Shown here piece by piece: positions 2,800 through 25,321 of a DNA stretch of 64,000 bases. The stretch comes from Hypanus sabinus. Lineage: Eukaryota. Under the pieces are notes generated by a model that ran no database searches, was not told the origin of the DNA, and was given only the letters and a program-made list of their open reading frames with translations. A program made the position numbers and the translations under genes. The DNA lies in contig NC_082710.1 of NCBI RefSeq assembly GCF_030144855.1, positions 174,840,001-174,904,000 of the forward strand. The letters run 5' to 3'. Each line of letters starts with the position of its first letter. The stretch's first letter is position 1.

Positions 2800-3045
2800 A
2801 AAGGGTTCCTGAATGACTCTGTTTCTGCCGGAACCTCCCTGACTGCCCCAGATCTTCCTCGCTATTTCCAGAATTTTCGCGAAGCCCCGGCAAGTCTCGG
2901 ACTAGCAGCGCTGTCATTGGCCGCCGCCTCGGAACCTTCTCCAACCTTCGGCGGTGAGTCACTCGCCCGCGTTTTCATTGGTTTACCTAGACGTCCCTCA
3001 AGAACGAAGCACCGCCCACATAGCCGCGCTGGGACTATATTAAGG
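2800..3045 (+). promoter_or_regulatory. HSP70 copy 1 promoter: heat shock elements, CCAAT boxes, AP-1, GC box, TATA
   Basis: Perfect 4-unit HSE TTCcaGAAttTTCgcGAA at 2866-2883; second HSE GAAccTTCtcCAAccTTC at 2932-2949; inverted CCAAT (ATTGG) at 2916 and 2977; TGAGTCA at 2955-2961; CCGCCC near 3012; TATATTAA at 3036-3043. Confidence 0.9.
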
Positions 3046-3145
3046 GACGGAGCAGCAAGCCATGCAGTAACGATCGGCTTGGAGAAGCAAGGAAGTCCTT
3101 CTGGTATTTCAATAAGGAACGTCGGAGCTTTCATCAGAAACACAG

Positions 3146-5068
3146 ATGCCTGCATCCAAGGGGACAGCCATCGGGATCGATCTGGGCACCACCTACTCCT
3201 GTGTGGGGGTCTTCCAGCATGGCAAGGTGGAGATCATCGCCAATGACCAGGGCAACCGCACCACCCCCAGCTATGTGGCCTTCAACGACACCGAGAGGCT
3301 CATCGGCGATGCGGCCAAGAACCAAGTGGCAATGAACCCCGCCAACACCATCTTTGATGCCAAGCGGCTCATCGGGAGGAGGTTTGATGACCCGACGGTG
3401 CAGTCTGACATGAAGCACTGGCCCTTCCAGGTGGTGAGTGACGGAGGGAAGCCCAAGGTGAAGGTGGAGTACAAGGGGGAGAACAAGACCTTTTACCCAG
3501 AGGAAATCTCCTCCATGGTGCTGACCAAGATGAAGGAGATTGCTGAGGCTTACCTCGGCTACATTGTCACCAACGCTGTCGTTACCGTTCCTGCCTATTT
3601 CAATGACTCCCAGCGCCAGGCAACCAAAGATGCTGGTGTGATAGCGGGTCTCAATGTCCTGCGTGTCATCAATGAACCGACAGCAGCTGCCATTGCCTAT
3701 GGCCTGGACAAGAAAGGCAAAGGGGAGCGTAATGTCCTCATCTTTGACCTGGGTGGTGGCACCTTCGACGTCTCCATTCTCTCCATTGATGACGGGATCT
3801 TTGAAGTGAAATCGACAGCCGGTGATACCCACCTGGGAGGAGAGGACTTTGACAACCGCATGGTCAATCACTTCATTGAGGAGTTCAAGCGGAAATACAA
3901 GAAGGACATCAGCCAGAACAAGAGAGCGGTGAGGAGGCTGCGGACGGCCTGCGAGAGAGCAAAGAGAACCCTGTCTTCCAGCACCCAAGCCAGTATTGAG
4001 ATTGACTCTCTGTTTGAGGGTGTTGATTTCTACACCTCAATCACCAGGGCTCGGTTTGAGGAGCTGAACTCTGACCTGTTCAGGGGCACTCTGGAGCCAG
4101 TGGAGAAAGCCCTGAGGGATGCCAAGCTGGACAAATCCCAGATCCATGAGATTGTCCTGGTCGGAGGCTCCACCCGCATCCCCAAGATCCAGAAGCTGCT
4201 GCAAGACTTCTTCAACGGTAGGGAGCTGAACAAGAGCATCAACCCCGATGAGGCCGTGGCCTATGGGGCAGCTGTCCAGGCGGCCATTCTGATGGGGGAC
4301 AAGTCGGAGAATGTTCAGGATCTGCTACTCCTGGATGTTGCTGCTCTGTCGTTGGGGCTGGAGACGGCAGGTGGAGTCATGACCACCCTTATCAAGCGGA
4401 ACACCACCATCCCCACCAAGCAGACCCAGATCTTCAGCACCTACTCCGATAACCAGCCTGGTGTCCTTATTCAGGTGTATGAAGGCGAGAGAGCCATGAC
4501 CAAGGACAACAACCTTCTGGGCAAGTTTGAGTTGAGTGGCATCCCTCCCGCTCCTCGTGGCGTACCCCAGATTGAGGTGACCTTCGATATTGACGCCAAT
4601 GGCATCCTCAATGTCTCTGCTGTCGACAAGAGCACTGGGAAAACAAACAAGATCACCATCACCAACGACAAGGGCAGGCTGAGTAAGGAGGAAATTGACA
4701 GGATGGTGCAGGAGGCCGAGATGTACAAGAATGAGGATGAAATGCAGCGGCAGAAGATTGCAGCCAAGAACTCCCTGGAGTCCTATGCCTTCAACTTGAA
4801 GGGCTCTGTGGAGGATGAGAAGATGGCTGGAAAGATCAGTGCAGAAGACAAGAGGAAAGTTATTGACCTGTGCAACGAGGCAATATCATGGCTGGAGAAG
4901 AATCAGATGGCAGAGAAGGAAGAGTTTGAGCACAAGCAGAAAGAGCTGGAAAAAGTCTGCAACCCCATCATTGCCAAACTGTACCAAGGAGCAGGCGCAG
5001 GGGAATCATGCAGGGCACAGGCTGGGAATGCCAGTTCCTCTGGACCAACTATTGAGGAGGTGGATTAA
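3146..5068 (+). CDS. hsp70: Intronless heat-inducible cytosolic HSP70, copy 1 (640 aa)
   Basis: Uninterrupted ORF with HSP70 signatures [22 protein letters not shown] and [14 protein letters not shown], and cytosolic C-terminus [15 protein letters not shown] promoter lies upstream. Confidence 0.98.
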
Positions 5069-5323
5069 AGGACTGTAAATGTGACAGTATGGGGCTTGCT
5101 CGGTTTGAGCTCTCTGGACACTTCAGTGGGTCTGATGCTGATGTTGGCTCTTGGGAATAGTCTCCACTGTAACACCACTGGGTCATGTCAATGTCCTGAG
5201 TCTGGCTGTGATGTTCTAATTGTAAACACTGGTAACTGGACTATTCAATTCCTTTGATCGGGTTCTCTGTATCGGGGGTATTTTTTTAATGTCACCACTT
5301 TTGGAATGTAAATTTTGTACAGT

Positions 5324-5356
5324 ATTAAATATGTTGTTATATATGCTTCGAATAAA
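5324..5356 (+). terminator. Polyadenylation signals of HSP70 copy 1
   Basis: ATTAAA at 5324-5329 and AATAAA at 5351-5356, followed by a T/GT-rich tract, about 280 nt after the stop codon. Confidence 0.7.
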
Positions 5357-5959
5357 TTGTTTAATTTTTCAATTGTTTGTAATTTTATTTAAATACCAGC
5401 GTAGCTGGGAAGGAATGTTTTTCTTTTGATTTCAAATATTGAAACTCCCCAATTTATGGGTGTTAAAATACTGCTGCATATAATCGGGTGACCCTTCCCC
5501 AAGCTCCCTTTCCCAGGGATATCTTCCTCCCAGATCCCATCACACTGTTCCTTGTTTCTGGATCTGGTTGTTAACACTTCCCCACTCTCACAGGTTCCGT
5601 GTGGCATTACTTTACCAGAAGGCCTGTGGTCCTTCAGGAAGGTGACTAACCCTCAACGTGGACAGATCCAGTGATGTTGGCCTTGGCCAGCAGCTCCAAC
5701 ATTGCCCCCCGACAAAGTATAATTAGCTGCCTTGGGGGAGGATTCCACACCCACATGCTGGGAATGAGGACTGGTTGTTGCAGTCGGCTCTGTGGTGAGG
5801 AGTGTGGGTCTGGACAGGTAGATGGGGGGGGGGGGACGTGTATGATTATGAGTGAATGTGTGTGCATTTTCTGAGTTGAGTTTACAAAGAATTTTTACGT
5901 ACTAATCATTTCAAGCCTTGCAGGGATTTCTGTAGGCTGTACATAGACTCCTTGACTGA

Positions 5960-6391
5960 NNNNNNNNNNNNNNNNNNNNNNNNNNNNNNNNNNNNNNNNN
6001 NNNNNNNNNNNNNNNNNNNNNNNNNNNNNNNNNNNNNNNNNNNNNNNNNNNNNNNNNNNNNNNNNNNNNNNNNNNNNNNNNNNNNNNNNNNNNNNNNNNN
6101 NNNNNNNNNNNNNNNNNNNNNNNNNNNNNNNNNNNNNNNNNNNNNNNNNNNNNNNNNNNNNNNNNNNNNNNNNNNNNNNNNNNNNNNNNNNNNNNNNNNN
6201 NNNNNNNNNNNNNNNNNNNNNNNNNNNNNNNNNNNNNNNNNNNNNNNNNNNNNNNNNNNNNNNNNNNNNNNNNNNNNNNNNNNNNNNNNNNNNNNNNNNN
6301 NNNNNNNNNNNNNNNNNNNNNNNNNNNNNNNNNNNNNNNNNNNNNNNNNNNNNNNNNNNNNNNNNNNNNNNNNNNNNNNNNNNNNNNNNNN
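5960..6391. other. Assembly gap (432 N)
   Basis: Run of N. Confidence 1.
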
Positions 6392-7009
6392 TGAAGGAAG
6401 TACCAATCTCCTAAATATATCCAATGACTTGGGGCCTCGGCAGATTCACACTTTGACTAAGGAAGTTCCTCCTAATTTGTGTTCACAGTACGTGTATACA
6501 AGACGCCATTTCTCTCGAGGACACTGACACCCAGGGCAGTTGCTTACAGGAGGTTTAATGGAATGGAAGTATTCCTGAGGATAGGAATTCTCTCCTGTTT
6601 GTTACTGAAGAGATACTGGGGTAATATCCGCGATGTTGGTGGCATTACTAAAAAAGAGAAAAGTAGAAACGATCGACACCTGTTAAATTCGGATGTTCAC
6701 ACGAAATTGTCACCCCACCACTCAGCCACCGTACAAGGCCGTCAAGGCATTGGAATGATTTCTTCAGTAACACTGGATCACCAAGCACACTCGAGCAAAT
6801 CCCTGAAGATGAGGGATTTTTTTTTTGAAAGGAAGCGTTGAAAGCACCCTCGAGTCATTTCTGAACAAAATAAACTTTTGCTAGACTGTAAAACTGGGGA
6901 AGCAAGGAACAACTGAGCAAAAAAAACACTAATCTCAGGAAGTTGTAAATCCATGAAATTTACTAATCCGTCCTTTGCAGATTACAAAGGCAACCTAGTA
7001 AATTTTCAG

Positions 7010-8615
7010 TTCTGCCCCACCGATCTTGTGTCTGCCTACTTGGACTCCATTTTATCCCCCATAGTTCAGATTCTCCCACCTACATCCAGGATACATCCCA
7101 TGCCCTTCACCTCTTCAATAACTTCCAATTCCCTGGTCCCGACCACTTCATTTTTACCATGGATGTTCAATCCTTATACACCTCCATTCCCCATCAAGAA
7201 GGCCTCAAAGCCCTCCGCTACTTTTTGAATAACAGACCCCACCAGTTCCCCAGCACCACCACACTTCTCCGGTTGACGGAGCTTGTTCTAACTCTCAATA
7301 ACTTCTCCTTTGGTTCTTCCCAATTTCTCCAGATCAAGGGCGTAACCACGGGCACTCACATGGACCCCAGCTATGTCTGCCTCTTTGTGGGTTATGTGGA
7401 ACAGTCTATGCTCCAAATCTATATTGGCACCACTCCCCAACTTTTCCTCCGCTACATCGACAACTACATTGGTGTTGCTTCCTGCACCCATGCTGAGCTC
7501 GTCAATTTCATCAACTTTGCTTCTAACCCAGCCCTTAAATTCACTTGGTCCATTCCCTCCATTTTCTTGATCTCTCGGTCTCCTTCTCTGGAGACAGACT
7601 ATCCACTGACATCTTCTACAAACCCACTGACTCCCATAACTATCTTGACTATACCTCTTCCCACCCTGCCCGATGCAAAAATGCCATTCCCTATTCCCAG
7701 TTCCTCCGTCTCCGCCGCATCTGCTCCCAGGATGAGGCTTTCCGTTCCAGGACTACTCAAATGTCCTCTTTTTTTCAAGATCATGTTTTCCCTTCTGGCG
7801 TCAACAAAGATGCCCTCACCCGCATCTCCTCCACTTCCCGCACTTCAGCCCTTAACCCATCCTCCCGTCACCACAACAGGGACCGTGTTCCCCTTGTCCT
7901 CACCTACCACCCCACCAGCCTCCGGATCCAACACATTATCCTCCGCAACTTCCGCCACCTTCAACAGGACCCCACCACCCAGCACATCTACCCCTCTCAG
8001 CTTTTCGCAGGGATCATTCACAAATGCTACACCTGTCCCCACACCTCCCCCCTTACCACCATTCGGGGCCCCAGACAGTCCTTCCAGGTGAGGCAACACT
8101 TCACCTGCGAGTCTGCTGGAGTTGTCTATTGCATCCGGTGCTCCCGGTGCGGCTGCCTCTACATCGGCGAGACCCGACACAGATTGGGGGACAGCTTCGT
8201 CGAACACCTCCGCTCCGTCCGTCACAATAGACAGGATATCCCGGTTGCCACCCACTTCAACTCTGTCTCTCATTCCCATCTAGATATGTCCGTACAGGGC
8301 CTCCTCTACTGCCATGATGAGGCTAAACTCAGGTTGGAGGAGCAACACCTCATCTACTGACTGGGTAGACTCCAGCCTGGAGGTATGAACATTGAATTCT
8401 CCAATTTCAGGTAATTCCATCCCCCTCCCCCTATCCCAGGTCCCTCTCTGCCTCTCTCCCCTTTCAACTTTCTGCTCCTTTATCTCTACAGTTCTTTCAT
8501 GCTTATCCCGTCCCCCTTTATCTTGACCCTGACGAAGGGTCTTGGCCTTAAACGTTGGCTACGCTTTTCTCACGGACGGTGCCTGACCTGCTGGGTTCTT
8601 CCAAAGTTGTGTACG
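7010..8615 (+). mobile_element. Penelope-like retroelement, 5'-truncated (RT + GIY-YIG endonuclease, frameshifted)
   Basis: MDVQSLYTSIPH, FLRYIDN, FLDL..., YKPTDSHNYL, VVYCIRCSRCGCLYIGET; terminal repeat with a decayed hammerhead motif near 8529. Confidence 0.88.
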
Positions 8616-8924
8616 TAGCGTTGTTGATTCCTGCCCAGCGAGTCTCAGCGGAGGTCTAATCCACCTTCCTTTTCATCGCTCTGCTCTGCAGCCACGCAAT
8701 TCCCCACTGTCGTCGAAGAGGGCGGAGAAGGTTTGAAGCCGCTCAACATCAGACTCCACCACTGCATGAGCGCGACTTCATCGCCTCCTCCGGCTGTTCT
8801 AATGACATTTGAGATAGCTGTGTCCTAATACGAACGCTCTCAACTTTTGTTAACTCCGTTCCGACACAAACTAAGGAAGTCTATAATAAAACATAACGAA
8901 GCACCGGGCAAGAAAATTTCTAAT

Positions 8925-8935
8925 TCTGTTTTTAC
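8925..8935 (-). terminator. snRNA 3' box, U1 copy 1
   Basis: GTAAAAACAGA about 10 nt past the U1 3' end matches the AAARRYAGA part of the 3' box consensus. Confidence 0.65.
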
Positions 8936-8944
8936 ATCGAAAAT

Positions 8945-9108
8945 CAGGGGAGAGCGCGAACGCAGTCCCCCACTACCACAAATTTTGCAGTCGAGTATCC
9001 CGCATTTGGGGACATCGCAGGCGTCAGCACACCCGAAGTGCAATGGGATAGCCTCGTCCTGGGAGAACCGCCTTCATGATCACGGTCTCTCCCCTGCCAG
9101 GTAAGTAT
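8945..9108 (-). ncRNA. RNU1: U1 spliceosomal snRNA, copy 1 (164 nt)
   Basis: Minus strand reads ATACTTACCTGGCAGGGGAG...ATTGCAC (U1A loop)...AATTTGTGG (Sm site)...GGGGGACTGCGTTCGCGCTCTCCCCTG; full canonical length. Confidence 0.97.
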
Positions 9109-9151
9109 GCTTTCCACACTCCGCCAGCCACATCCAGGCCTATGCCATACC

Positions 9152-9304
9152 CCTCAGAGTTAAGGCAAACAAATATTTTAAATACCTACTTCCTACTTTT
9201 ACACACCATCCCCCTAGAGTACCGTTACCACAAAGACTACAAATCTAGATTAGTTGATTAGCTGCTGTAGTTCACTGGTGACAATTTCCAGACCTTAATC
9301 TGCA
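9152..9304 (-). promoter_or_regulatory. U1 copy 1 promoter: PSE and octamer-like distal element
   Basis: PSE-like TTGCCTTAACTCTGAGG at about -44 to -60 (9152-9168); ATGCAGAT octamer-like motif at about -190 (9297-9304). About 450 bp of upstream sequence is conserved with copy 2. Confidence 0.65.
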
Positions 9305-9959
9305 TCTTTTCCAAAAAAGGAAATCTGCGCCACGATTGGTTTTGCAGCGACTGCCCGTTACCGAACCCGACCACACGGTGGCAGTGTTTTCATTGAGGAA
9401 ATACAGGGAGCTGCCTGAGGCTCACAGGGTAAATGAACAGGCGACCCCTTCCCCTGCCCCGCACTGGAAAGGGTGAAGGGGTGATTAGTCAGCATGTTAC
9501 AGGGGTGTCAGCTTTTCACTTATGAAGGGAGACTGAGCACAGAACAGCACACGAGCAGATCTTTTGGCCCAAAATGCCTGTTCAGCTAAATTAAATGAAA
9601 CTCCTTCTGTCTGCGCACGGTCCGTATCCCTTCATATCCCGCATGTTCTAGTTTAAAACCCTCTTAAGCTGCACCGTATCCGCTTCCACCACCATACCTG
9701 CAAACCTGTTCCGGCAGCAAACATCAACGTGTGTGTAAAAAAAATCTCCTTTAAGCTAACCCCCATCATAAAAATGGATGTATTTGAATTTTCTCTTCTG
9801 CGGAAAAGATTCCAAAAACCTCTTCTATAAGTGTTTCTCAGCAGTTTTCAAGTTTTGCCTCCATTCTTGACACTCGAGAGAAATCCAGAGGGTTAGATAA
9901 GTTTTCTTAGTGGAGGAGAAGGGTGAGCGTAAATGGGAGAGAGAGGCCCCGGGTGGGCT

Positions 9960-10803
9960 GAAAACAAGAACTTTTACCCCATGGCCGGGCGAGCTCAAAC
10001 CAGGGGGCCTGAGGACTGGACACCATCTATTCCAGCAGACTCAGGAGGAAAGTAATCAGGAGACACCACTCACCCCGGCCACTCCCTGTTTGACCTGCTG
10101 CCGTCCAGCAAAAGGTTCAGGACTCTAAAAACCAGAACAAATAGACAGAGGAACAGCTTCTACCCCAGAGATGTGAACAAATAGACGGAGGAACAGCTTC
10201 TACCCCAGAGATGTGAACAAATAGACAGAGGAACAGCTTCTACCCCAGAGATGTGAACAAATAGACGGAGGAACAGCTTCTACCCCAGAGATGTGAACAA
10301 ATAGACGGAGGAACAGCTTCTACCCCAGAGATGTGAACAAATAGACGGAGGAACAGCTTCTACCCCAGAGATGTGAACAAATAGACGGAGGAACAGCTTC
10401 TACCCCAGAGATGTGAACAAATAGACAGAGGAACAGCTTCTACCCCAGAGATGTGAACAAATAGACAGAGGAACAGCTTCTACCCCAGAGATGTGAACAA
10501 ATAGACTGGGGAACAGCTTCTACCCCAGAAGCTATCACACCACTCCCACAGAACAATGACTGAAACTGTGAGCGCACACAAGGATTCAAATACTCGTACT
10601 AACGGCACTTTGTGCATTACTGTTACATTCTGGTGCTCCTATAACTTATTTTCTGTATCTTATTAACTTATTTTCTATTTAATACTGTTTTTCTATTACT
10701 GTCTTGTTTTATCTACCGTTTTATTTAATTACCTGAGAGGAAACCAAACAGAGTTTCATTGTATCTATGTATAATGACAATAAAGATCATTCATTCATTC
10801 ATT
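9960..10803 (+). mobile_element. 3' end of a Rex1/Babar-type LINE with (TTCA)n tail, containing a minisatellite
   Basis: HSLFDLLPSSKRFRTLKTRTNR..NSFYP-like C-terminal motif; AATAAA followed by cattcattcattc. Confidence 0.6.
10135..10529 (+). repeat. 40-bp minisatellite, about 10 copies
   Basis: Unit GAACAAATAGAC(A/G)GAGGAACAGCTTCTACCCCAGAGATGT repeated head to tail with no spacers. Confidence 0.97.
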
Positions 10804-10909
10804 GAGGTGCAAGGGTTAGCGAGGAAGAACTTCATCTGTGGTTGTAATCTGGAACCTACTGACGGGGGGGAGTGGGGTAACAGGGACTGTCACAACATTT
10901 AACATTTAA

Positions 10910-13900
10910 TGTGGGGGACCATTTCATCAAACACCTCCAGTCCATCCGCCAAAAATGGAGCCTCCCACTGGCCACACAGTATAATTCTGATTCCCATTAA
11001 TGCTCGACTGGTCAGTCCATGACCTCCTCATGTGATATGATGAGGCCTCCCTCAGAATGGAGGAGAAAAACCTTAGGGTTTCCAATCAGGGTATCCCCCC
11101 CCACACCCCCCCCCAGCTCTTCCTTTCCCTCCCCTGGCCCTTTACACTTCCCAGCTGCCTGTAACTTCCCCAGGTCCACTCCTCCTTCCTTTTCTGCTAC
11201 AGTGCAATCCCCTCACCTGTCAGATTCCTCCCTCTCCAGCCCTTTACCCATGTTAAATACCTGGCTTCACCGGCTGGCTATCCTCCTTTCCTTCTCCCCA
11301 CTTTTCTTTATTCTGGCCTTTTCCTCTTTCTTTCTCAGGTCTGAAGAAGGGTCTCGGCCCTCGGCCTGACCGTTTGCATATATGCTGCCTGACCCGCCGA
11401 GGTCCTCCAGCATTTTGTGTCTGTGTGTGTTGCTTTGGATTTCCAACACATGCAGAATTTCTCGTGTTGATGACTGAAGGAGCGTCTCTTGTCAGTTTTC
11501 ACCCTCGGCATCTTAACCGGAAGACTGCAATCATGAGGGAGATCAGTGGGGAGGGACGAATGGACAAGTGAGTTACGTAGGGAGTGATCCCTGCGAGGAG
11601 AGAAAGTGGGAGGGAAAGGTGTGCTTGGTGGTGGGATCCCGTTGCAGATGGCAGAAGTTACGGAGAATTATGTGCTGGATGCAGAGGCTGGTGGGGTGGT
11701 AGGTGAGGACAAGAGAAACTCTGTCTCTGTTAAGTGGCAGGAGAATAGGGTGACAGCAGATGTGCGTGAAATGGAAAAGAGGCGGGTGAGGGTAGAGTTG
11801 GTGGTGGAGGAAGCGAATCCCCTTCTCTGAAAAAGGAGGACATCTCCTTTGTTTTGGAATGGAAAGCCTCATCCTTAGAGCAGATGCAGCGGAGATGGAG
11901 GAATTGAGAGAGAGGGGATGGCCTTTTTACAAGTCACAGGGTGGGAAGAGGTATAGTCCAGGTTGCTGTGAGACTCAGTGGGTTTACAAACAATTTCAGT
12001 AGATGAGCTGAGCTGAGTCCAGAGATGGAGACAGAAAGATCAAGAAAGGGGAGGAAAGTGTCAGAAATAGACCAGGATGTAGACAGGAAGGGTCTGAAGC
12101 AGGTGGGATAAATCTGAGGCATGGTATGAAAATATAAGTTTGGTGAGGCAGGAAGAAGCAGGTTTTTGTTCCTTGGGTAGGAGGTAGAAAGGGGAGATGT
12201 GGGGTGAAGGAACTATGAGGTTGGTGGCAATCCCTAGAGTTAATAAGATTACTGATGTTGTGAAAGACAGTAGCCTGGTGCTCCTTAGCAGGGTCCTGTT
12301 CGAGGGGTATGTAAGAGGAGGTGTCTGAGAATTGTCGCCTTTCCTTAACAAGGTAGAGGTCAGTCCGCCAGACTACTACAGCACCCCCACCCTCATCTGC
12401 GGGTTAGATGGCGAGGTTAGGATTAGTACGGTGAGAGTGGAGAGCTGTGCGTTGGGCAGGAGTGAGATTAAGATTGGAGAGGGGAGTCGAGACGGTTGAT
12501 GTCTCATCAGCTGTCAGCAATGAAAAGATCCAGAGCTGGCAGGAGACTAGACTGGGACGTCCAGGAAGAGGATGAGGGTTGAAGACGGGAGATGGGGTCA
12601 TTGGTGCGGGGTGGGGAGTCCTTGCCAAAGAAGCAGGCACGGAGACGGATGCGGTGGAAAAAGGGTTCTGCGTCAGGGTGGGCGAGGAACTCACTGAGGT
12701 GTGCGCTCAGGGTTACAAAGGAGAGGCCCTTACTGACCTCAGAAGGTTCTTCCTGAGAGAGGGGAAAGTCAGAGGGAATTGTGGAGACCCGGCACGGATG
12801 AGGGCTGGGATCAGCGGGTGCAAGGGGATTGACAGTGTCTGAGGAGAGGGAAGGTGTGGTGAGATGAAGATGGGGTCTCTCAGGATGGCGGTAGGATCTG
12901 AGGGACACAGGACTGCAGTGCGGTGGTGGGGGAAGGGGAGACTGGGACAGTGGGTAAAGTCCCGGCCTGGAGGTGCTGTCGATCAGTGTCCCGGCTGGAG
13001 TTGGGGTTGGGGGTTGCACAATCGGCACTTTGAAAGTGTCCAAGGTCCTTGGAACCCACACTGACCACGGTGGAGCCCCGGTTCTGAATCTACTCGGGAT
13101 CGTCAGAACCGTTGAGGTTGGCAGCAGGGATCGCAGTCTGGAGACATCAGGGCCTGCCGGCATCGGAGACGGCATGATTCTGTAGTCTGAAGCCGGGTGA
13201 TCTTCCTTCCAATCTTTACAGGGCACGAAAAAGGCAAAGAACCGACGATTGAAAGTCAGAGAACGTGTAGAGCAGAGCCATTGCAGGTAGGGAGAGAGAA
13301 TGCCAGAGGGTCTCCTATCACCCCACCAGCCCGTGTCCATAATTCTCCGTAACATCCGCCATCTGCAACAGGATCTCACTTCTAAGCTCATCTTTGCCAC
13401 CCTCCCCTCACTTTCTGCTTTCTGCAGGGATCACTCCCTACCAACTTCTTGCCCATTCCTCCCTCCCCACTGCTCTCCTTCCGAACAGTTATTCTTGCAA
13501 GCTGAACCTGCCCCTACACCTCCTCCCTCACTACCATTCAGGACCCCAAACAGTCCTTCCCGGTGAGGCGTCATTTCACATGTGAGCCTGTTGGGGACAC
13601 CTACTGTGTCCGGTGCTCCTGGTCTGGCTTCCTGTATATCGGTGAGACCCGACATAGATTGGGAGTCCGCTTCATCGAGCAACAATGCCCCAGCCACCAT
13701 AAACAGTGGGATCTCCCAGTGGCCACCCACCCATTTTAATTCCATTTCACATTCCCATTCCGACACGTCTAGCCATGGCCTCCTCTGCTGTTGTGATTAG
13801 GCCACTCATAAGTTGGAGGAACAACACATTTTATTCCATCTGGGTAGCCTCCATCCTCATGGCATGAACATTAATTTCTCAAAATTCCAATAGTGGCCCT

Positions 13901-14120
13901 CCCCCTTCATCATTCCGCATTCCCATTTTCCTCTCTCACATTATCTCTTTACCTGCCCAGTATCTCCCTCTGGTGCTCCTCCTCTTCCCTTCAATCCATG
14001 GCCTTCTGTCCTCTCCTCTCGGATTCTCTCTCCTCCTGCTCTTTATCTACTTCCCGGCTCTTTACTTCATGCCCTTCTCCTCTCCCTATCACCTACTCCT
14101 GTATTTCTTCCACCCCTCCT
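10910..14120. mobile_element. Cluster of Penelope-like fragments in both orientations (+10910-11470, -11530-13310, +13320-14120)
   Basis: SKGLSFV...FFHRIRLRACFFG and LVLTYHPTSL on the minus strand; GIY-YIG region and terminal repeat on the plus strand. Confidence 0.8.
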
Positions 14121-15009: not shown

Positions 15010-16700
15010 GCTTAGTCACTTTTCTCCCTGCTGTCTTTGGCATTTACCCATCTTTGTCCAGACTAATAAATCCTCTTCCAGCAGAGAATTCCCATTGGCA
15101 TATCCAAATGACACTCACTTCAACGGTTCCTCAGCTTGTTTTTGATTTGATTCATGAGGCTAAAACCTCTTTCATGAGCAGCACTAGTTGTAAGAAAGGT
15201 TCTGCCATTGTCCGTCAGCTTTGCAAGGTCACAAAACTCTTCATTTTGAGTTGCAAATGTCACCATTTCAGACGAGCTAGTAATCGGTTAGGATTTAATC
15301 TTTTCCTGTACAGTAAATTTGAAGTCGTTGTACTGCTTCACTATGACAGCAAGGAAATCAGGGTATTTTCCACACAAGGCACTGACCTGGTCTTTGCCAA
15401 AATGGAGGTCCCATCCCGCATGTACAGAAAAATCAAAAGCCGCCCATTGTACCTCACCCTCAGGAAACCTCTCTTCTCAATAAACACAGAGGTGGTTTAT
15501 CAAGGTCACCAGAGAATTTGTAGCTCCTGTCACAAATTTGGCTGAGAAAAATGTAACTTTCTCACTCCAAGACACATTGTCTCCCAGATACTTCCTTCTT
15601 ATCTCGTTAATTTTGCCTCGTGCAAAATGAAGTTCATCAATTGGCATTAATACACTCCTTTGCAGTCTTCAACAGCGCAGCCTGTTCTTTAGAGACATCA
15701 TTTAAGACGACTAAAGCTATATTTATTCACTGTTTATCAAATTTCTGTGACAATATATCTTGTGATATATCTTATCATCCTCAGAATATACAATCAATGC
15801 CTCGTACGTATTTATGATTGTCTGCAGTGCAACGCGTCTAGACAGTATCTCACTTTATTCAATGGTCTGAAAGCAAGAGCTTCATTCCCAGAGGAGTCTG
15901 CAATTCCTTTACATGTGCATCTTTTAGTTGAAGATTGAGAAAACACCCAGAAACCACGCAGGCCAGGCTCTTCTCTTGCTGCTGCCATCAGGTGGAGATA
16001 CAAATGCCTCAGTTCTCAGACTCACCACCACCAGGTTCCCGAACAGTTACTACCCCCCAACCATTAGGCTCTTGAACAAAAGGAGACAGCTACCCTCATT
16101 TAAGGACTCAGTTATATTGTTATTTCATGTTTGTTATTTATTTATATTTGCACGGCTTGTTTACTGTTTATAGTTCTGGATGTTTACAGTTACTGTTCTA
16201 TAGATTTGCGGAGTATACCCACAGGATGAGAATTTCAGGGTTGTACGTGGTCAGATGTATGTACTCTGACAATAAATCTTACTTTGAACTTTGATAACAT
16301 AAAGAAATGCAAACACATAATTTTTGCCTCTCCAGCTGTCCGGCGTTTGGACACACTTTTCCATTTGTTCATCGATGTGTTGGACTGAATGCACGGAGGT
16401 ATTCATTTTAACTGCCAGCAAAATGCTGTCAATAAGAACTTGATCTCCTCTGAGTTTGATCATTTTCGCTCTCGTTCATCCGCACAAAACGCACGTAGGG
16501 CCTGTAGCGGGGTAATGGAGGATTTTGTCACCGAGGCTTTTGTACACCATTCATATGGAATTTGTTTGCTAAATGACATTTTAAAAGACAAGTTTCTAAA
16601 TATTACTCCACTTCTTCCCACTTGCAAATTCCCCAGCAACTCTTGCATCCGTGACAATCCACACAGCTAACACCATTCTCTGCATTATATTTCTCAGAGC
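15010..16700 (-). mobile_element. Degenerate hAT transposase fossil (ZNF862/C17orf113-like clade), interrupted by a LINE fragment
   Basis: Minus strand gives TSAAHERGFSLMNQIKNKLRNR (hAT dimerisation motif, about 15120-15200) and FSQSSTKR...AFRPLNKVR (about 15850-15950); many stops and frameshifts. Confidence 0.8.
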
Positions 16701-17488
16701 TGCAGGTTCCAAACTCACAAGCGTTCAGTGTAGCTTTTTCAATTGTTTAAGCCATTCCACTTCGAATGAACTCACTCTTCACTCGGCCTGAGGTCACCTG
16801 GACAGAACACTGTTCATCGTCACCATCAATATTTAACACCGTGATTCCCACAGTCCTGATCAACAAGCCATGAACACTACCTCTTTCTTTTTTAAAATTT
16901 GTGCCTCTATATGACTTATCTTATTTTAACTGTTTAATATGCACAAATATTCTTATTTTCTCTAATACCATGTATTGCATCGTACTGTTCCCTCAAAGAC
17001 AGCAGATTTCACTATATGTGCCAGATTCTGACTTTGTATTGAGGACACATCTAACATGTCAAGGAGAGACGTTATGAATGCAATGGGAGGTGAGAACCCC
17101 TGACCATCACTGTCACTGAAGAGAGTGATGAGCAAATGGGTAGGCCGAGTAAACAGTAGACAAGTCCCCAGACTCTGATGGAAAGCATCCCGGGGAACTG
17201 ACAGAAAGAGCTGACTTTATAGTAGATGTGTTTGTGGAAATTTACCAATTTTGCTTTGTGAGGAACAGTCCTGAATTTCAATATTCAGCCTCCCAGAGTG
17301 AATTGGAGGTCAGTGGTCAGTTCTTATTTAACGGCTTAGTGGGAAGAGAAAGATTTTGACCTGTTTGTGGGTATGGAAGGACAGTAAAGTCATGGCATCA
17401 TTCTGTATGAACCAATCCCCATCATTCTGCACTGACCTACAAACACACACTTACACCAATCAATCACCCACACACTGGGGGAGATTTA

Positions 17489-18028
17489 CACTCAGTGGCC
17501 ACGTTATTCGGTACATCCCACACATAATAAATTCTGTCTTAGTGTGCGTCTGTGCTCTAACACGTCCATTTCAATCTTCTATGTGTTGTTCATTCAGAGA
17601 GGCTCTTCTGCACACCAGTGTGGTACCACGTGGATTCTTCAGTTACTGTCACCTTCCTGTCATCCAGAACCAGACAGGCCATTCTTCTCTGACCTTCTCA
17701 ATAACAAGGCATTTTCACTCGCTGCATGGTTTTGTTTTACACACCATTCTCTGTAAGCTTTAGTGAATGTTGTGAACAAAAATCCGAGAGATCAGTAGAT
17801 TTTGAGATACTCAAACCACCCTGTCTGGCACCAACAGTCATTCCACAGTAAAAGTCACCTAAAAAGTCACATTTCTTCCCCATTCCAATGTTTGGTCTGG
17901 ACAACAACTCAACAATGTCTGAATGCTTTTATGCATTGAGCTGCTGCCACATGATTGGCTGATCAGTTCTTTTACATTAACCAGCAGACACACAACTGTC
18001 CTGTACCTAGTAAAGTGCCCATTGAGTG
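17489..18028. mobile_element. Non-autonomous Tc1/mariner-type element (duplicate)
   Basis: Same TIRs and TA flanks as 1896-2434. Confidence 0.8.
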
Positions 18029-18393
18029 TACGTCTGTGAGTGTACCTGTATATTTATACCGAAACAAAAGAACTCTCGCAAATTTCATTACTTCTGTCAG
18101 CCTAAAAATTCTTTTTTAAACTCCATGTCCCGCCCAGAACAGGGCCATCACCGGCAAATTCCTTTCGTCAAAATTAAATGTCACAAACTCTGACTTTCTC
18201 TTTTAAGTGTTTGTTCTGTTGCTAATTTGGTCCTGCAGATATTACCCAGAGCTGTCGTTCCTTGTTTTCTCGCTTTGTCCCTTAAGGCCGGAGAATTCCC
18301 TCCCCAGAAGGTGCTTGAGACTTTTTCTTGCGTGGAGGGAACTTTTGGAAGAGGTGCAATATTGCTTGTTTCGTACAGTTTAACAAGTGTTTC

Positions 18394-18639
18394 AAAGGGT
18401 TCCTGAATGACTCTGTTTCTGCCGGAACCTCCCTGACTGCCCCAGATCTTCCTCGCTATTTCCAGAATTTTCGCGAAGCCCCGGCAAGTCTCGGACTAGC
18501 AGCGCTGTCATTGGCCGCCGCCTCGGAACCTTCTCCAACCTTCGGCGGTGAGTCACTCGCCCGCGTTTTCATTGGTTTACCTAGACGCCCCTCAAGAACG
18601 AAGCACCGCCCACATAGCCGCGCTGGGACTATATTAAGG
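18394..18639 (+). promoter_or_regulatory. HSP70 copy 2 promoter (HSEs, CCAAT, AP-1, TATA)
   Basis: Same elements at offset +15594; perfect HSE at 18460-18477. Confidence 0.9.
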
Positions 18640-18739
18640 GACGGAGCAGCAAGCCATGCAGTAACGATCGGCTTGGAGAAGCAAAGAAGTCCTTCTGGTA
18701 TTTCAATAAGGAACGTCGGAGCTTTCATCAGAAACACAG

Positions 18740-20662
18740 ATGCCTGCATCCAAGGGGACAGCCATCGGGATCGATCTGGGCACCACCTACTCCTGTGTGG
18801 GGGTCTTCCAGCATGGCAAGGTGGAGATCATCGCCAACGACCAGGGCAACCGCACCACCCCCAGCTATGTGGCCTTCAACGACACCGAGAGGCTCATCGG
18901 CGATGCGGCCAAGAACCAAGTGGCAATGAACCCTGCCAACACCATCTTTGATGCCAAGCGGCTCATCGGGAGGAGGTTTGATGACCCGACGGTGCAGTCT
19001 GACATGAAGCACTGGCCCTTCCAGGTGGTGAGTGACGGAGGGAAGCCCAAGGTGAAGGTGGAGTACAAGGGGGAGAACAAGACCTTTTCCCCAGAGGAAA
19101 TCTCCTCCATGGTGCTGACCAAGATGAAGGAGATTGCTGAGGCTTACCTCGGCCACAATGTCACCAACGCTGTCGTTACCGTTCCTGCCTATTTCAATGA
19201 CTCCCAGCGCCAGGCAACCAAAGATGCTGGTGTGATAGCGGGTCTCAATGTCCTGCGTGTCATCAATGAACCGACAGCAGCTGCCATTGCCTATGGCCTG
19301 GACAAGAAAGGCAAAGGGGAGCGTAATGTTCTCATCTTTGACCTGGGTGGTGGCACCTTCGACGTCTCCATTCTCTCCATTGATGACGGGATCTTTGAAG
19401 TGAAATCGACAGCCGGTGATACCCACCTGGGAGGAGAGGACTTTGACAACCGCATGGTCAATCACTTCATTGAGGAGTTCAAGCGGAAATACAAGAAGGA
19501 CATCAGCCAGAACAAGAGAGCCGTGAGGAGGCTGCGGACGGCCTGCGAGAGAGCAAAGAGAACCCTGTCTTCCAGCACCCAAGCCAGTATTGAGATTGAC
19601 TCTCTGTTTGAGGGTGTTGATTTCTACACCTCAATCACCAGGGCTCGGTTTGAGGAGCTGAACTCTGACCTGTTCAGGGGCACTCTGGAGCCAGTGGAGA
19701 AAGCCCTGAGGGATGCCAAGCTGGACAAATCCCAGATCCATGAGATTGTCCTGGTCGGAGGCTCCACCCGCATCCCCAAGATCCAGAAGCTGCTGCAAGA
19801 TTTCTTCAACGGTAGGGAGCTGAACAAGAGCATCAACCCCGATGAGGCCGTGGCCTATGGGGCAGCTGTCCAGGCGGCCATTCTGATGGGGGACAAGTCG
19901 GAGAATGTTCAGGATCTGCTACTCCTGGATGTTGCTGCTCTGTCGTTGGGGCTGGAGACGGCAGGTGGAGTCATGACCACCCTTATCAAGCGGAACACCA
20001 CCATCCCCACCAAGCAGACCCAGATCTTCAGCACCTACTCCGATAACCAGCCTGGTGTCCTTATTCAGGTGTATGAAGGCGAGAGAGCCATGACCAAGGA
20101 CAACAACCTTCTGGGCAAGTTTGAGTTGAGTGGCATCCCTCCCGCTCCTCGTGGCGTACCCCAGATTGAGGTGACCTTCGATATTGACGCCAATGGCATC
20201 CTCAATGTCTCTGCTGTCGACAAGAGCACTGGGAAAACAAACAAGATCACCATCACCAACGACAAGGGCAGGCTGAGTAAGGAGGAAATTGACAGGATGG
20301 TGCAGGAGGCCGAGATGTACAAGAATGAGGATGAAATGCAGCGGCAGAAGATTGCAGCCAAGAACTCCCTGGAGTCCTATGCCTTCAACATGAAGGGCTC
20401 TGTGGAGGATGAGAAGATGGCTGGAAAGATCAGTGCAGAAGACAAGAGGAAAGTTATTGACCTGTGCAACGAGGCAATATCATGGCTGGAGAAGAATCAG
20501 ATGGCAGAGAAGGAAGAGTTTGAGCACAAGCAGAAAGAGCTGGAAAAAGTCTGCAACCCCATCATTGCCAAACTGTACCAAGGAGCAGGCGCAGGGGAAT
20601 CATGCAGGGCACAGGCTGGGAATGCCAGTTCCTCTGGACCAACTATTGAGGAGGTGGATTAA
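18740..20662 (+). CDS. hsp70: Intronless heat-inducible cytosolic HSP70, copy 2 (640 aa)
   Basis: Same signatures as copy 1; differs at 4 aa (Y117S, Y139H, I140N, L551M). Confidence 0.98.
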
Positions 20663-22769
20663 AGGACTGTAAATGTGACAGTATGGGGCTTGCTCGGTTT
20701 GAGCTCTCTGGACACTTCAGTGGGTCTGATGCTGATGTTGGCTCTTGGGAATAGTCTCCACTGTAACACCACTGGGTCATGTCAATGTCCTGAGTCTGGC
20801 TGTGATGTTCTAATTGTAAACACTGGTAACCGGACTATTCAATTCCTTTGATCGGGTTCTCTGTATCGGGTTATTTTATTTAATAATGTCATCTGTTTTG
20901 GAATGTAAACTTTGTACAGTTTTAAGTATTTTTTAAGATGCTTTCTATAAATGTTTTCATTTTTTAAATTGGGTTTAATTATATTTCGTCACCAGAGAAG
21001 GAAAACTTGCTATTTTGCTTTCAAAAACATAAATTCAACAATTTCTGGGAGCTAAATTATTGATGCATATAAATGAATATCCCCTCCTCATCCTCCCTTT
21101 CCCAAGTCCAGCACACCTTATTTCTCGATCCACTTTGTCAACATTTCTCCACTCTCACAGGTGCAGTGTGGCATTACTTTACCAGAAGGCTTTTGGTTTT
21201 TCAAGAAGGTGACCAGTCCCCAAAGTTGACAGATCTAGTGATGGCCTTGACCAGCAGCTCCTGCATTGTCACCAAAAACAGCTCAATTAGCTGCCTTGGG
21301 AGAGAATCCCATATGCTGGGATCGACGATTGGTATTGGCAGCAGGCTCTGTTTTGAGGTGTGTGTTTGGACAGGTACATGAAGGGGAGGTGAAGGTCAGG
21401 TTGCGGGCAACTGGGACTATCTGGGAGGGATGCTGTTGTGGGGCATGGACAAGTTGGGTAGAAGGGCCATTTCCCATGCTGCTGTCCACACCACTGTTGG
21501 CGTTTCTGTGCATCACCAACATCGTATCATGTCAGGATATAAAGGAACTGTATCAGTTACAAGGTATTTTACCTCATAATTATGTCAAACCTTGCAGTGA
21601 TGTCTGTAGACTCTAAACAGATGGTTATTGAACTCCTGATGTAAATCACCTTAAGACAGAGGAGCAGAATGAATCCATTCAGTCCATTGATGCTGCTTTG
21701 GCATATGATCATTGCTGATTTATTTTCCATCTTCATCCCATCTCCTGATTCTCTCCATCCATAACCACTCACTACTCGGCAATCTATCAACCCTGTCTGT
21801 TAATGTGTCCAATAACTTGAGCACTCCGCAGCCATTTATGGTAAGGATTCCACAGTTTCAACACACTCTGAGTGAAGAAATTCCTCCTCGTCTCTATTCG
21901 TATTACATGTATCCAAAGACACCAATTCATTCTAGGATATTGACACACAGGGCTGTTCCTTACAGGAGGTTTACTGGAATCTAAGAATTCCCGAGGATAG
22001 GACGTGTCTCCCGTTTCTCACTGAAGAGGAAACACTGTGGGAAGTATCCACGTTGCTGGTGGCATTACTAATGAGTAAAGTGAAATTGAAACCTGTTAAA
22101 TTCGGATCGTAATATCTAATAATCTTCCCCACAGTTCCCTTAAACTTCTGGGTCAAGGAGAACCTACAGCAGGTCTTCAAGGCACTGGGGTGATACCGCC
22201 AATACTGGGGACACACACACACACACACACACCAGTTTAATACCACTGATATACAATCGATAATTGTTTATAGTAATACTATAAGAAATACATATAAAAT
22301 AAATTAAATAGTTATTGCAAAGAGGCAGCAAAATACTGTGAGGTAGTGGGCATGAGGTTATTGTCCATTTAGACTTCTGATGGCAGAGGGGAAGAAGTTG
22401 TTCCTGAAAAGCTGGGTGTGTGTCTTCTGTACCTTTTCCTTGAAAGTCAGGCAGTATCTATAACCATATAACAATTACAGCACAGAAACAGGCCATCTTG
22501 ACCCTTCTAGTCCGTGCCGAACACTTAAATTCACCTAGTCCCACCGACCTGTACTCAGCACATAACTCTCCATTCCTTTCCTGTCCAATTTTACTTCAAG
22601 TATGTTGGCAGATGAACACTGGACCAACAGCAGACCAACAGAAACTCGTCAAATCCATTGGCAACAGCTATCCTGCTCATGGACTTCATCTCTTCCACTG
22701 AGGACCAAGTTAAACTATTTTACCACAGTGAGATCTTCCTGTATTAACGCCGTATTTATTGACACCTCG

Positions 22770-23480
22770 AGTACAGGTAAAAGTGGCATCACAAGTAGAT
22801 AGGGTCGTCAAGGGAGCTTTTGGTACATCGGCCTTTATAAATCAAAGTATTGAGTATAAGAGTTGGAATGTTATGGTGAGGTTGTAAAGGCATTGGTGAG
22901 GCCGAATTTGCAGTACTGTGTGCAGTTTTGGTCACCTAATTACAGGAAGGATATTAATAAGGTTGAAAGAGTGCAGAGAAGGTTTACAAGGACCTTGCCG
23001 GGACTTGAGAAACTGAGTTACAGAGAAAGGTTGACTAGGTTAGGACTTTATTCCCTGGAGCGTTGGAGAATGAGGGGAGACTTGATAAAGGAGTATATAA
23101 TTTTTTTTATTATTTTTAGAGGAGTATTAAATTATGAAGGATATAGATAGAGTGAATGCAAGCAAGCTTTTTCCACTGTGGCTTGGGAGAGAAAAAAAAA
23201 CAGGACATGGGTTAAGAGTGAAGGGGGAGAAGCTTAAAGGGAATATTAGGGAGAGATTCTTCATACAGAGAGTGGTGGGAGTGTGGAATGAGCTGCCAGA
23301 GGAAGTGGTGAATGCAGGCTCACTTTTAACATTTAAGAAAAACTTGGACATACATGGATGAGTGGGGTATGAAGGGGTATGGTTTAGGTGCAGGTCAGTG
23401 GGACTTGGCAGAAAAATGGTTCGGCACAGCCAAGAAGGGCCAAGAGGCCTGTTTCTGTGCTGTAATGTGCTATGGTTCTA
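22770..23480 (+). mobile_element. CR1 LINE 3' fragment
   Basis: LVRPNLQYCVQFWSP, ERVQRRFTR, LGLYSLE..RMRGDLI, RVVGVWNELP. Confidence 0.9.
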
Positions 23481-24339
23481 CTTTAAAATGTCTCCCTTGA
23501 ATACTGAACTTCCTCTGCCCTCTACAATAGAATATGGAGGATTGATTTCCGAGTGGAAAAATATACTCCAAGTGACAAGGGATGCTGTGATTGGCACCAA
23601 CATACCGTAAGCGTTGGCTGAAGTCAGCATCTGCAGATGGAAACGGACAGTCGACGTTTCGGATTAGACAGACCCTTGATCTCGAGTTTTAAACTCTGTC
23701 CCGAATGGACAAGCTTTTATCTTGAGACTGATTCCTGGATGTAGAAGTCAAGGGAGCAAATATCGCCTTGCGTCTGAAAGTAGAAAAACTTCCGATTAAT
23801 GGTTCTTTAGGGTTCTTCTCCCGTTGGAGTGGGTTGGGTGGTAGGGAGTATACGCCTCAACTACGGTTGTATTATACAAGATGAACTCGCAGAGTGCCAC
23901 GTGAGTGAATATAATTATTAAAATGTATAGGATGTAATGGTAATAAATTTATTGTGAATGAAGCATATTTCGTGGAAAAAAATCTATAGCAAAAAAGCAG
24001 CCACCGAGACTTCAGCAGGACCTGCTGTATGTTGCTTTGCTATTTGCAGCAGAGTATCTGCAGAGTCCTGACGAAATGTCTCGGCCCGAAACGCCGACAG
24101 CGCTTCCACCAGCATTTCGTGAGTGTTTGAATTTCCAGCATCTGCAGATTTTCTCGTGTTTGTCCTTTTCTACAGATTTGGTGTCAATGGCTGTTCCCAG
24201 CACCTATTGTTTTTTCCTCAGCTTACTTTTTACCTACCGCTTAAGATAACAAGTCAATGCCCAATTGCTTAAGAGAACGAAATGACTTAGCAAGTGTAGC
24301 GAACGCGCTCGTTTTTCCACATCTAATATAAATGTTCAT

Positions 24340-24351
24340 TCTACTTTTCAA
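24340..24351 (-). terminator. snRNA 3' box, U1 copy 2
   Basis: TTGAAAAGTAGA at the same spacing; the motif is kept although the surrounding flank has diverged. Confidence 0.65.
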
Positions 24352-24359
24352 TTGAAAAT

Positions 24360-24523
24360 CAGGGGAGAGCGCGAACGCAGTCCCCCACTACCACAAATTT
24401 TGCAGTCGAGTATCCCGCATTTGGGGACATCGCAGGCGTCAGCACACCCGAAGTGCAATGGGATAGCCTCGTCCTGGGAGAACCGCCTTCATGATCACGG
24501 TCTCTCCCCTGCCAGGTAAGTAT
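24360..24523 (-). ncRNA. RNU1: U1 spliceosomal snRNA, copy 2 (164 nt)
   Basis: Identical by eye to copy 1 over all 164 nt. Confidence 0.97.
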
Positions 24524-24566
24524 GCTTTCCTCTCTCCGCCAGCCACATCCAGGCCTATGCCATACC

Positions 24567-24720
24567 CCTCAGAGATAAGGCAAACAAATATTTTAAATAC
24601 CTACTTCCTACTTTTACACGCCATACTCCTAGAATACCGTTACTGCAAATGCTGCAAATCTAGATTAGTTGATTAGCTGCTGTAGTTCACTGGTGACAAT
24701 TTCCAGACCTTAATCTGCAT
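24567..24720 (-). promoter_or_regulatory. U1 copy 2 promoter: PSE and octamer-like distal element
   Basis: TTGCCTTATCTCTGAGG at 24567-24583 and ATGCAGAT near 24713-24720, at the same spacing as in copy 1. Confidence 0.65.
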
Positions 24721-25321
24721 CTTTTCCAAAAAAGGAAATCTGCGCCACGATTGGTTTTGCAGCGACTGCCCGTTACCGAACCCGACCGCACGGTGGCAGT
24801 GTTTTCATTGAGGAAATACAGGTTGCTGCCTGAGGCTCACAGGGTAAATGAACAGGCGACCCCTTCCCCTGCCCCGCACTGAAAAGGGTGAAGGGGTGAT
24901 TAGCCAGGATGTTGCAGGGCTTTTCACACGAAGGGAGAGTGAACACAGGACAGCACACGAGCACGCCTTTCGGTCCAAAACAATGTTATGCCAAATTAAA
25001 CTAAATCTGAAAGATGAAGGGAAGATTCGGTGGGGCGCTTCTCATTGTATAAAATTCTTCCCGGTTTTTTTTGGTGCATCCTCCGACATCCCAGAGCTGG
25101 GACTATTCCTTGCGAAGTAGAAATAGGACAGAGGGGCACAGGGTAAATGGACAGCGAGAACATTTTCCCCGTGGCCAAGCGATCTCAAACCGGAGAGCCT
25201 GGGTTTAGGTGAACGTTTCCCAATCTTTTTTGTGTTACACCTCCATGGCTCCTAGACCATAGCCCCAGCTCCCCTTCTCACCTCCTGGCCATTACATACA
25301 CACTATAAAGAAGTTTTATTT

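Follow-up and report, generated by a model that had tools for sequence, protein, structure and literature searches.

In the 87C1 hsp70 cluster of Drosophila melanogaster, the hsp70 genes are interspersed with heat-inducible alpha-beta non-coding repeats, which carry hsp70-derived heat-shock promoters and for which we know of no function. The human RNU1 genes at 1p36 lie in large, loosely repeated units that also carry tRNA genes. In the mammalian MHC class III region, HSPA1A and HSPA1B form an intronless, heat-inducible tandem pair that is homogenised by conversion, with the tract ending just outside the gene; no snRNA gene is known from the interval that separates them. Concerted evolution of Hsp70 duplicates is attributed to Nikolaidis & Nei 2004 where PMC3123226 mentions it, and the same article cites Pelliccia et al. 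2001 for a mixed unit of 5S rDNA and U1 snRNA in the crustacean Asellus aquaticus.

The window analyzed here is a stretch of 64,000 nucleotides from the Atlantic stingray Hypanus sabinus, in which an HSP70 gene and a U1 snRNA gene are found together twice (units 1 and 2). A full-text literature search found no HSP70-U1 repeat unit, in line with the initial annotation, to which no such unit was known. As far as the Asellus aquaticus unit is characterized in that citation, it is similar in that U1, together with a promoter of its own, sits inside the repeat of another amplified family and shares in its homogenisation. Unlike in Asellus aquaticus, the partner in the stingray is a protein-coding, predicted heat-inducible Pol II gene, and the window shows two units 15.6 kb apart that are mostly unhomogenised. 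With HSPA1A/HSPA1B, the locus shares an intronless, presumably heat-inducible tandem pair and an apparently conversion-homogenised tract ending just outside the gene, and with their neighbourhood a TRIM/PRY-SPRY gene; the stingray array, however, is larger, with at least eight distinct HSP70 proteins encoded on the same chromosome (the unit 2 protein at two places). As at Drosophila 87C1, non-coding RNA units lie among the hsp70 genes of one amplified locus, but the stingray U1 has a putative snRNA-type promoter, has no heat-shock element, and specifies an essential RNA. Like human RNU1, the stingray locus shows true U1 genes that are homogenised among copies and sit in long, poorly conserved units, with conservation reaching several hundred bases into the 5' flank and a short way into the 3' flank, whereas its units carry HSP70 and no tRNA gene, none having been found here. 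Among mixed snRNA repeat units under concerted evolution, HSP70 is a new partner gene.

The two HSP70 genes, both on the + strand, are intact and intronless (unit 1, 3146-5068, a single ORF of 1923 bases; unit 2, 18740-20662), and each encodes a protein of 640 aa with an EEVD C-terminus. The proteins are identical at 636 of the 640 residues, the coding sequences differ at nine sites, and the Pfam PF00012 match is full-length (residues 8-614, E 3e-263). A perfect heat-shock element of four pentamers is located about 280 nt upstream of the ATG in both units (+ strand; unit 1, 2866-2883, TTCnnGAAnnTTCnnGAA; unit 2, 18460-18477). Closer to the ATG, some 105 nt ahead of it, each unit has a TATA box (3036-3043, +, in unit 1). 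Given the full domain, the EEVD terminus, the lack of an intron, and a promoter with heat-shock element and TATA box, both are inducible HSPA1-type HSP70 genes as judged from their sequence. Perfect three-pentamer matches to the heat-shock element number five, at three sites, in the whole window; four of them fall, overlapping, on the two HSP70 promoters. The remaining match, at 63759, hinted at a further HSP70 gene past the right window edge, a candidate that we dismissed as a chance match because it has no promoter similarity.

The U1 snRNA genes are encoded on the - strand (unit 1, 8945-9108; unit 2, 24360-24523). Both score 159.6 bits against Rfam RF00003 across the full model (positions 1-166), far above the gathering score of 69.5, and their coding regions are identical (164/164). 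In both copies we read an intact 5' end ACUUACCUG, the loop AUUGCAC, and the sequence AAUUUGUGG, which we take to be the 5' end, the U1A-loop, and the Sm site of U1, respectively. According to the covariance model and these motifs, both loci are full-length U1 spliceosomal snRNA genes. An snRNA-type Pol II promoter is expected to have a PSE near -55 and an octamer enhancer near -200. Of the promoter elements listed in the initial annotation, an octamer-like element, ATGCAGAT (-197), and a 3'-box-like AAARNNAGA, 10-20 nt beyond the 3' end, were recovered in both genes, but no clear match to a PSE was found at -55. Between the two copies, the flanking positions -1 to -96 are nearly identical, and positions -135 to -264 show no differences. 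No heat-shock element was found at either U1 promoter, and across positions 1-32000 U1 is the only Rfam family matched at E up to 0.1. HSP70, presumably driven by HSF, and U1, with its putative snRNA-type promoter, are probably each transcribed independently. The "perfect donor" once read on the + strand at this place is simply what the complementary strand of every U1 5' end looks like.

In each unit, the two genes are convergent, and the distance from the HSP70 stop codon to the U1 3' end is 3876 bases in unit 1 and 3697 bases in unit 2, which agrees with the earlier description of a full U1 gene (-) 3.9 and 3.7 kb after each intronless HSP70 gene (+). The units, offset by 15,593 bases, share order, orientation, and colinear flanks, and the two HSP70-U1 pairs are copies of one cassette, not independent observations.

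Divergence between the units, given as K2P for colinear blocks, is a mosaic. The HSP70 island (1-5276, +, in unit 1, where it is cut by the left window edge; 15594-20870, +, in unit 2, with the heat-shock element inside) comprises at least 3.1 kb of upstream sequence, the coding sequence, and 208 nt of the 3'UTR; it holds 21 differences in 5276 bases (K2P 0.004), and its first 1750 bases are identical. This island is at least 5.3 kb long and stops abruptly 208 nt past the stop codon, within the 3'UTR. The U1 island (8925-9500 and 24340-24915, both -) is about 0.6 kb long, extends from the 3' box to about -390, and has a K2P of 0.046, with the coding sequence identical. Outside the gene islands, on both sides of U1, five colinear remnants show a K2P of 0.28-0.35. 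Three lie on the HSP70 side: 5277-5836 versus 20871-21392 (+, K2P 0.32), in the diverged HSP70 3' flank of unit 1 (5277-5959, +); 5882-5947 versus 21557-21621 (+, K 0.28); and 6447-6718 versus 21862-22132 (+, K2P 0.32). Directly upstream of the U1 island, remnants colinear with the rest are present in both units (K 0.34-0.35), and the last of all (9931-10011 versus 25121-25201, K2P 0.35) is the right edge of the old cassette; no colinear match was found beyond it, and the array ends on the right at 25201. As in a mixed repeat, the genes (K 0.004 and 0.046) are far closer between the units than their surroundings (0.28-0.35), and the tract borders are sharp.

The middles of the two spacers (unit 1, 6719-8913; unit 2, 22133-24329) are unrelated, with no homology found between them by global alignment, the score of which equals that of shuffled sequence. 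Their near-equal lengths (2195 and 2197 bases) raised the idea of a hidden homology; alignment revealed none, and the similarity in length is regarded as a coincidence. The middle of unit 1 carries a decayed Penelope-like element with ORFs at 7159-8091 and 7545-8360 and weak RVT_1 and GIY-YIG matches in adjacent frames, which is the Penelope pattern; parts of this middle recur at 11603-12054, 13506-13887, and 40618-41010. In unit 2, the segment 22860-23358 (+) is presumably a C-terminal fragment of a CR1-type ORF2, to which it was assigned by a CR1 motif, and parts of the middle resemble transposon-like sequence of one skate locus (L001). The different transposons reported earlier for the two spacers, Penelope and CR1, are both borne out, and they would have been inserted later than the duplication.

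Unit 1 also contains an unfilled assembly gap (N run, 5960-6391) in its spacer, so that its HSP70-U1 linkage spans a scaffold join. This gap and the identity of the first 1750 bases are what an assembly artefact could draw on, in which a single real unit had been written twice, either from two haplotypes or through a mis-join at the gap. Such an artefact is hardly credible and was rejected: the five blocks diverge by about 25% and the coding sequences at nine sites, their unrelated 2.2-kb middles hold different transposons, this divergence is far above haplotype difference, and unit 2 is free of gaps. HSP70-U1 adjacency is seen in unbroken sequence in unit 2, and the join in unit 1 is supported by the blocks flanking its gap (5882-5947 and 6447-6718), which match their gap-free counterparts in unit 2 colinearly, with order and orientation preserved.

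The best explanation, to which we give a probability of roughly 0.7, is an old tandem co-duplication of an HSP70-U1 cassette followed by separate homogenisation of the two genes, the linkage itself having arisen as a side effect of array amplification. U1, complete with its promoter, would have landed some 1.5-4 kb downstream of HSP70, the two genes tail to tail, within an expanded HSPA1-type array; then, long ago, a stretch of 10 kb or more containing both genes would have been duplicated in tandem. Afterwards, HSP70 and at least 3 kb upstream of it may have been homogenised by their own events of gene conversion or unequal exchange, and the U1 gene, from the 3' box to about -390, separately by the same kinds of process. 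The remainder of the unit would have drifted to about 25% difference and been partly overwritten by different retrotransposons, with U1 as a hitch-hiker in the HSP70 repeat unit. The background K is equal at the HSP70 end of the cassette and at the end with the U1 promoter, which points to a single duplication that included both genes. The old co-duplicated cassette proposed in the initial annotation is supported by the five colinear remnants and the near-identical genes.

In both units, homology breaks off sharply immediately beyond the U1 3' box, which is unexpected under a simple course of duplication and decay. This sharp end would suit a later arrival of U1, in which the HSP70 units are older tandem paralogues and U1 was not co-duplicated; it would have entered one spacer, and a U1 segment of about 0.6-1 kb would then have been copied across, whether by ectopic gene conversion or by a small transposition at the DNA level. 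The U1 island (K 0.046) is indeed younger than the background (K 0.32), and cartilaginous fishes generally have HSP70 tandem arrays that lack U1. We nevertheless consider a later arrival unlikely, because the remnants immediately upstream of the U1 island are old (K 0.34-0.35) and colinear in both units, which indicates that the spacer around U1 belonged to the old duplication; the shared orientation and similar distance are, moreover, what co-duplication predicts.

Other cartilaginous fishes were represented by two skates (Leucoraja erinacea and Rhinoraja longicauda), the sawfish Pristis pectinata, and the sevengill shark Heptranchias perlo, the comparison leaving out the closest relatives, Hemitrygon akajei and Mobula. 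No U1 gene was found within 10 kb of the 13 HSP70 genes examined in these four species (about 139 kb), suggesting that HSP70-U1 adjacency is lineage-restricted. The non-coding flanks of Hypanus gave no alignment with those of skate, sawfish, and shark outside the core HSP70 promoter, which aligns over about 160 bases with Heptranchias and in a 49-base piece with Pristis. The TRIM (PRY-SPRY) gene that is also present in the stingray window has an ortholog adjoining HSP70 in two of the compared loci (89% and 81% aa identity). The initial annotation had proposed that the pairing may be functional, and had held that adjacency confined to this species would speak against it; the loci of Leucoraja, Rhinoraja, Pristis, and Heptranchias, all without U1, come close to that case, and together with the replaced spacer and the U1 promoters free of heat-shock elements they argue against the proposal.

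In its more general form, this proposal makes the HSP70-U1 pair a working module, in which U1 output under stress would be tuned by heat-shock read-through past a weak poly(A) signal, running antisense across U1, or by shared open chromatin. The genes are convergent and 3.7-3.9 kb apart, and both have stayed intact and linked since the duplication at K ~0.32. In the 3' flank of HSP70, unit 2 has only the variant TATAAA (20946) where unit 1 has AATAAA (5351), and its next canonical signal on the + strand is at 22298. In addition, small Hypanus sabinus runs contain 57-69% of the sampled spacer and U1 words, which would mean a transcribed spacer if these runs, the type of which was guessed, are RNA. 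A module is nonetheless improbable: the adjacency is missing in the four other cartilaginous fishes, no heat-shock element lies near U1, the spacer is unconserved with conservation confined to the two genes, and in unit 1 canonical poly(A) signals (the one at 5351 and further ones at 6869 and 8885) precede U1. Neither adjacency in a distant lineage, nor a shared heat-shock element, nor a conserved spacer, as would be expected of a conserved functional pair, was found. Still more doubtful, and very improbable in our estimate, is a stingray stress switch, in which HSP70 read-through would hit U1 or cover it in antisense and lower new U1 at the time when heat shock relaxes telescripting, with selection having kept the linkage through repeated amplification in Myliobatiformes. 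Functional coupling of HSP70 and U1 is unsupported.

Instead, HSP70 and U1 look to have been paired by an accident of gene amplification in one lineage, not as a regulatory device, as far as sequence comparison can tell. If the pairing has long been kept within Myliobatiformes, there would be room for selection on the linkage; if it were both conserved among stingrays and coupled to the heat-shock response, that response would be physically linked to the supply of U1, which no finding favours. Under old co-duplication with separate homogenisation, the locus would be a clean natural case in which gene conversion has worked on two unrelated genes within one old duplication, each with its own tract and date, and the diverged background would preserve the true age of that duplication. 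It would also indicate that a working U1 gene can travel along with an expanding protein-coding array.

The Rfam scan identified exactly two RNA genes in the whole 64 kb of this region of the Atlantic stingray (Hypanus sabinus, assembly GCA_030144855.1, chromosome of 187 Mb), both of which are full-length U1 genes on the minus strand (8945-9108 in unit 1 and 24360-24523 in unit 2, with a score of 159.6 bits apiece where the threshold is 69.5) and are identical at every base. The plus strand carries two HSP70 genes (3146-5068 and 18740-20662), each an unbroken 1923-base ORF of 640 aa; their proteins are identical at 636 of 640 residues, give a full-length Pfam HSP70 match, and end in EEVD. Upstream of each HSP70 gene, a perfect four-unit heat-shock element (2866-2883 in unit 1, 18460-18477 in unit 2) is accompanied by an additional imperfect one, CCAAT boxes, and a TATA box ~105 nt 5' of the ATG. 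The genes are convergent, with 3876 bases (unit 1) and 3697 bases (unit 2) from the HSP70 stop codon to the U1 3' end. The initial annotation had described an HSP70 gene facing a full U1 gene twice in the window, and its main points are all correct according to Rfam, the ORFs, Pfam, and the distances.

A run of N (5960-6391), which is left unfilled, lies between HSP70 and U1 in unit 1, so that the linkage there depends on a scaffold join. This join is supported, because the gap flanks (5882-5947 on the left, 6447-6718 on the right) match 21557-21621 and 21862-22132 of the gap-free unit 2, with order and orientation preserved. In unit 2 the adjacency is found in continuous sequence, independent of the join.

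Self-comparison of the window places unit 2 at an offset of 15,593 bases from unit 1, and the two units read as a mosaic of three ages. The youngest part is an island around HSP70 (1-5276 vs 15594-20870; 21 differences, K2P 0.004), which in unit 1 extends past the left window edge and breaks off within the 3'UTR, 208 nt 3' of the stop codon and ~75 nt 5' of the unit 1 AATAAA. Its first 1750 bases (1-1750 vs 15594-17343) contain zero differences and the next 3.5 kb differ by ~0.6%, a pattern suggestive of two conversion events 5' of HSP70, nested and of very recent date. The U1 island, from the 3' box to about -390 (8925-9500 vs 24340-24915), has K 0.046, with no differences in the 164 coding bases or in -135 to -264; the patch from -97 to -131 is variable. 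The oldest part consists of five colinear remnants on both sides of U1: the 3' flank (5277-5836 vs 20871-21392, K 0.32), the left and right gap flanks (K 0.28 and 0.32), a block far upstream of U1 (9500-9600 vs 24914-25005, K 0.34), and the last one (9931-10011 vs 25121-25201, K 0.35). Colinearity between the units was looked for past 10011 and 25201 and none was found; therefore, the array ends on the right with unit 2. A minisatellite (10135-10529; 40-base unit, 9.9 copies, 98% matches) lies between the unit 1 U1 promoter and the unit 2 upstream block.

The middles of the spacers (6719-8913 vs 22133-24329) are unrelated, their global alignment scoring as shuffled sequence does, and they contain different retrotransposons, as had been claimed: in unit 1 a decayed Penelope-like element, whose RT and GIY-YIG matches are weak and fall in neighbouring frames, and in unit 2 a C-terminal fragment (22860-23358) that we take, from a CR1 motif, to be CR1-type ORF2. 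Elsewhere, a retroelement reverse-transcriptase ORF fragment is present at 49518-49913 on the minus strand (RVT_1, E 2e-13).

Since background divergence is equal on the HSP70 side and the U1 promoter side, a single old duplication, spanning at least 10 kb, would have carried both genes. With K ~0.32 in this background, the duplication may date back tens of millions to more than 100 million years under any plausible vertebrate neutral rate, an uncalibrated range; the remnants on both sides of U1 thus bear out the proposal of an old co-duplication. However, inter-unit homology halts abruptly in both units once the U1 3' box is passed (8914-8925, 24330-24340), which is not a neat fit to one old duplication and leaves room for U1 having been copied into a spacer that was already duplicated; the stop may also mark a site of repeated breakage or a hot spot for transposon insertion. 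After an old joint duplication, separate gene-conversion or unequal-exchange events would have homogenised the HSP70 and U1 islands, because the two differ in divergence and both are sharply bounded. Such homogenisation is well known in HSP70 duplicates and U1 gene families, and HSPA1 pairs maintained by conversion are already known. Concerted behaviour of HSP70 duplicates is also noted in PMC3123226 (citing Nikolaidis & Nei 2004).

The Hypanus array exceeds the part visible in the window: this chromosome encodes at least eight distinct full-length HSP70 proteins, and that of unit 2 has two coding loci. The closest relatives of Hypanus, Hemitrygon and Mobula, have multi-copy HSP70 families like its own. 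In 22-kb loci around HSP70 genes of four further species, scanned with Rfam at gathering thresholds, no U1 gene was found: Leucoraja erinacea (L001 and L004, four HSP70 genes, ~34 kb), Rhinoraja longicauda (L006 and L007, two genes, ~39 kb), Pristis pectinata (L003 and L005, five genes, ~44 kb), and Heptranchias perlo (L002, two genes, ~22 kb). A TRIM-like gene in the window has a PRY-SPRY (B30.2) exon (56266-56826, plus strand) with 89% protein identity to the last TRIM-like exon by the Pristis HSP70 pair (L003:1512-2072) and 81% to the Heptranchias counterpart (L002:658-1203), so the compared loci and the window share one neighbourhood with a conserved TRIM-HSP70 linkage, although the exon is found 31 kb to the downstream side of the array in Hypanus and 8 kb upstream in the compared neighbourhood. 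The skate, sawfish, and sevengill shark loci lack U1, and the pairing is lineage-restricted. Either it arose after the lineage had parted from sawfishes and skates, or these groups lost it.

The second Pristis cluster (L005, CM019888.1:4200178-4222067), ~270 kb from L003, comprises three HSP70 genes whose copies are more diverged (81-89% to a skate protein), and it also adjoins a TRIM gene. An HSP70 protein, P0026 (UniRef A0A318D012), carries in UniRef the label DnaK from the bacterium Kangiella spongicola; it shares 95% identity with the stingray HSP70, groups with shark HSP70s, and most likely represents fish DNA contaminating that bacterial assembly.

Other than proximity, nothing in the sequence links HSP70 to U1. 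The plus-strand 'perfect donor' simply complements the 5' end of U1, as it would in every U1 gene. Functional coupling, which had been proposed, is unsupported and has low odds: the U1 promoters contain no heat-shock element with one mismatch allowed, and the spacer is not kept, global alignment finding no conservation in the middles. In its favour, unit 2 has TATAAA at the place of the unit 1 AATAAA, with the next canonical poly(A) signal 1.6 kb beyond, and small runs from the same organism (run type being the tool's guess) contain 57-69% of sampled spacer and U1 words, which would be surprising if they were low-coverage DNA. As speculation, a convergent heat-induced neighbour would be a conceivable way of tuning U1 output in stress.

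Tandem arrays of HSP70 are general, but the U1 insert is not, because the HSP70 loci of the four species lack it. The full-text literature search found no description of an HSP70-U1 repeat unit, in agreement with the initial annotation. Mixed repeat units joining U1 to another multigene family, such as crustacean 5S rDNA-U1, are known (cited in PMC3123226); the stingray arrangement resembles them in placing U1 in another family's repeat unit and differs in that the partner is a protein-coding heat-shock gene. What is new here is a U1 gene carried in the repeat unit of such a gene.
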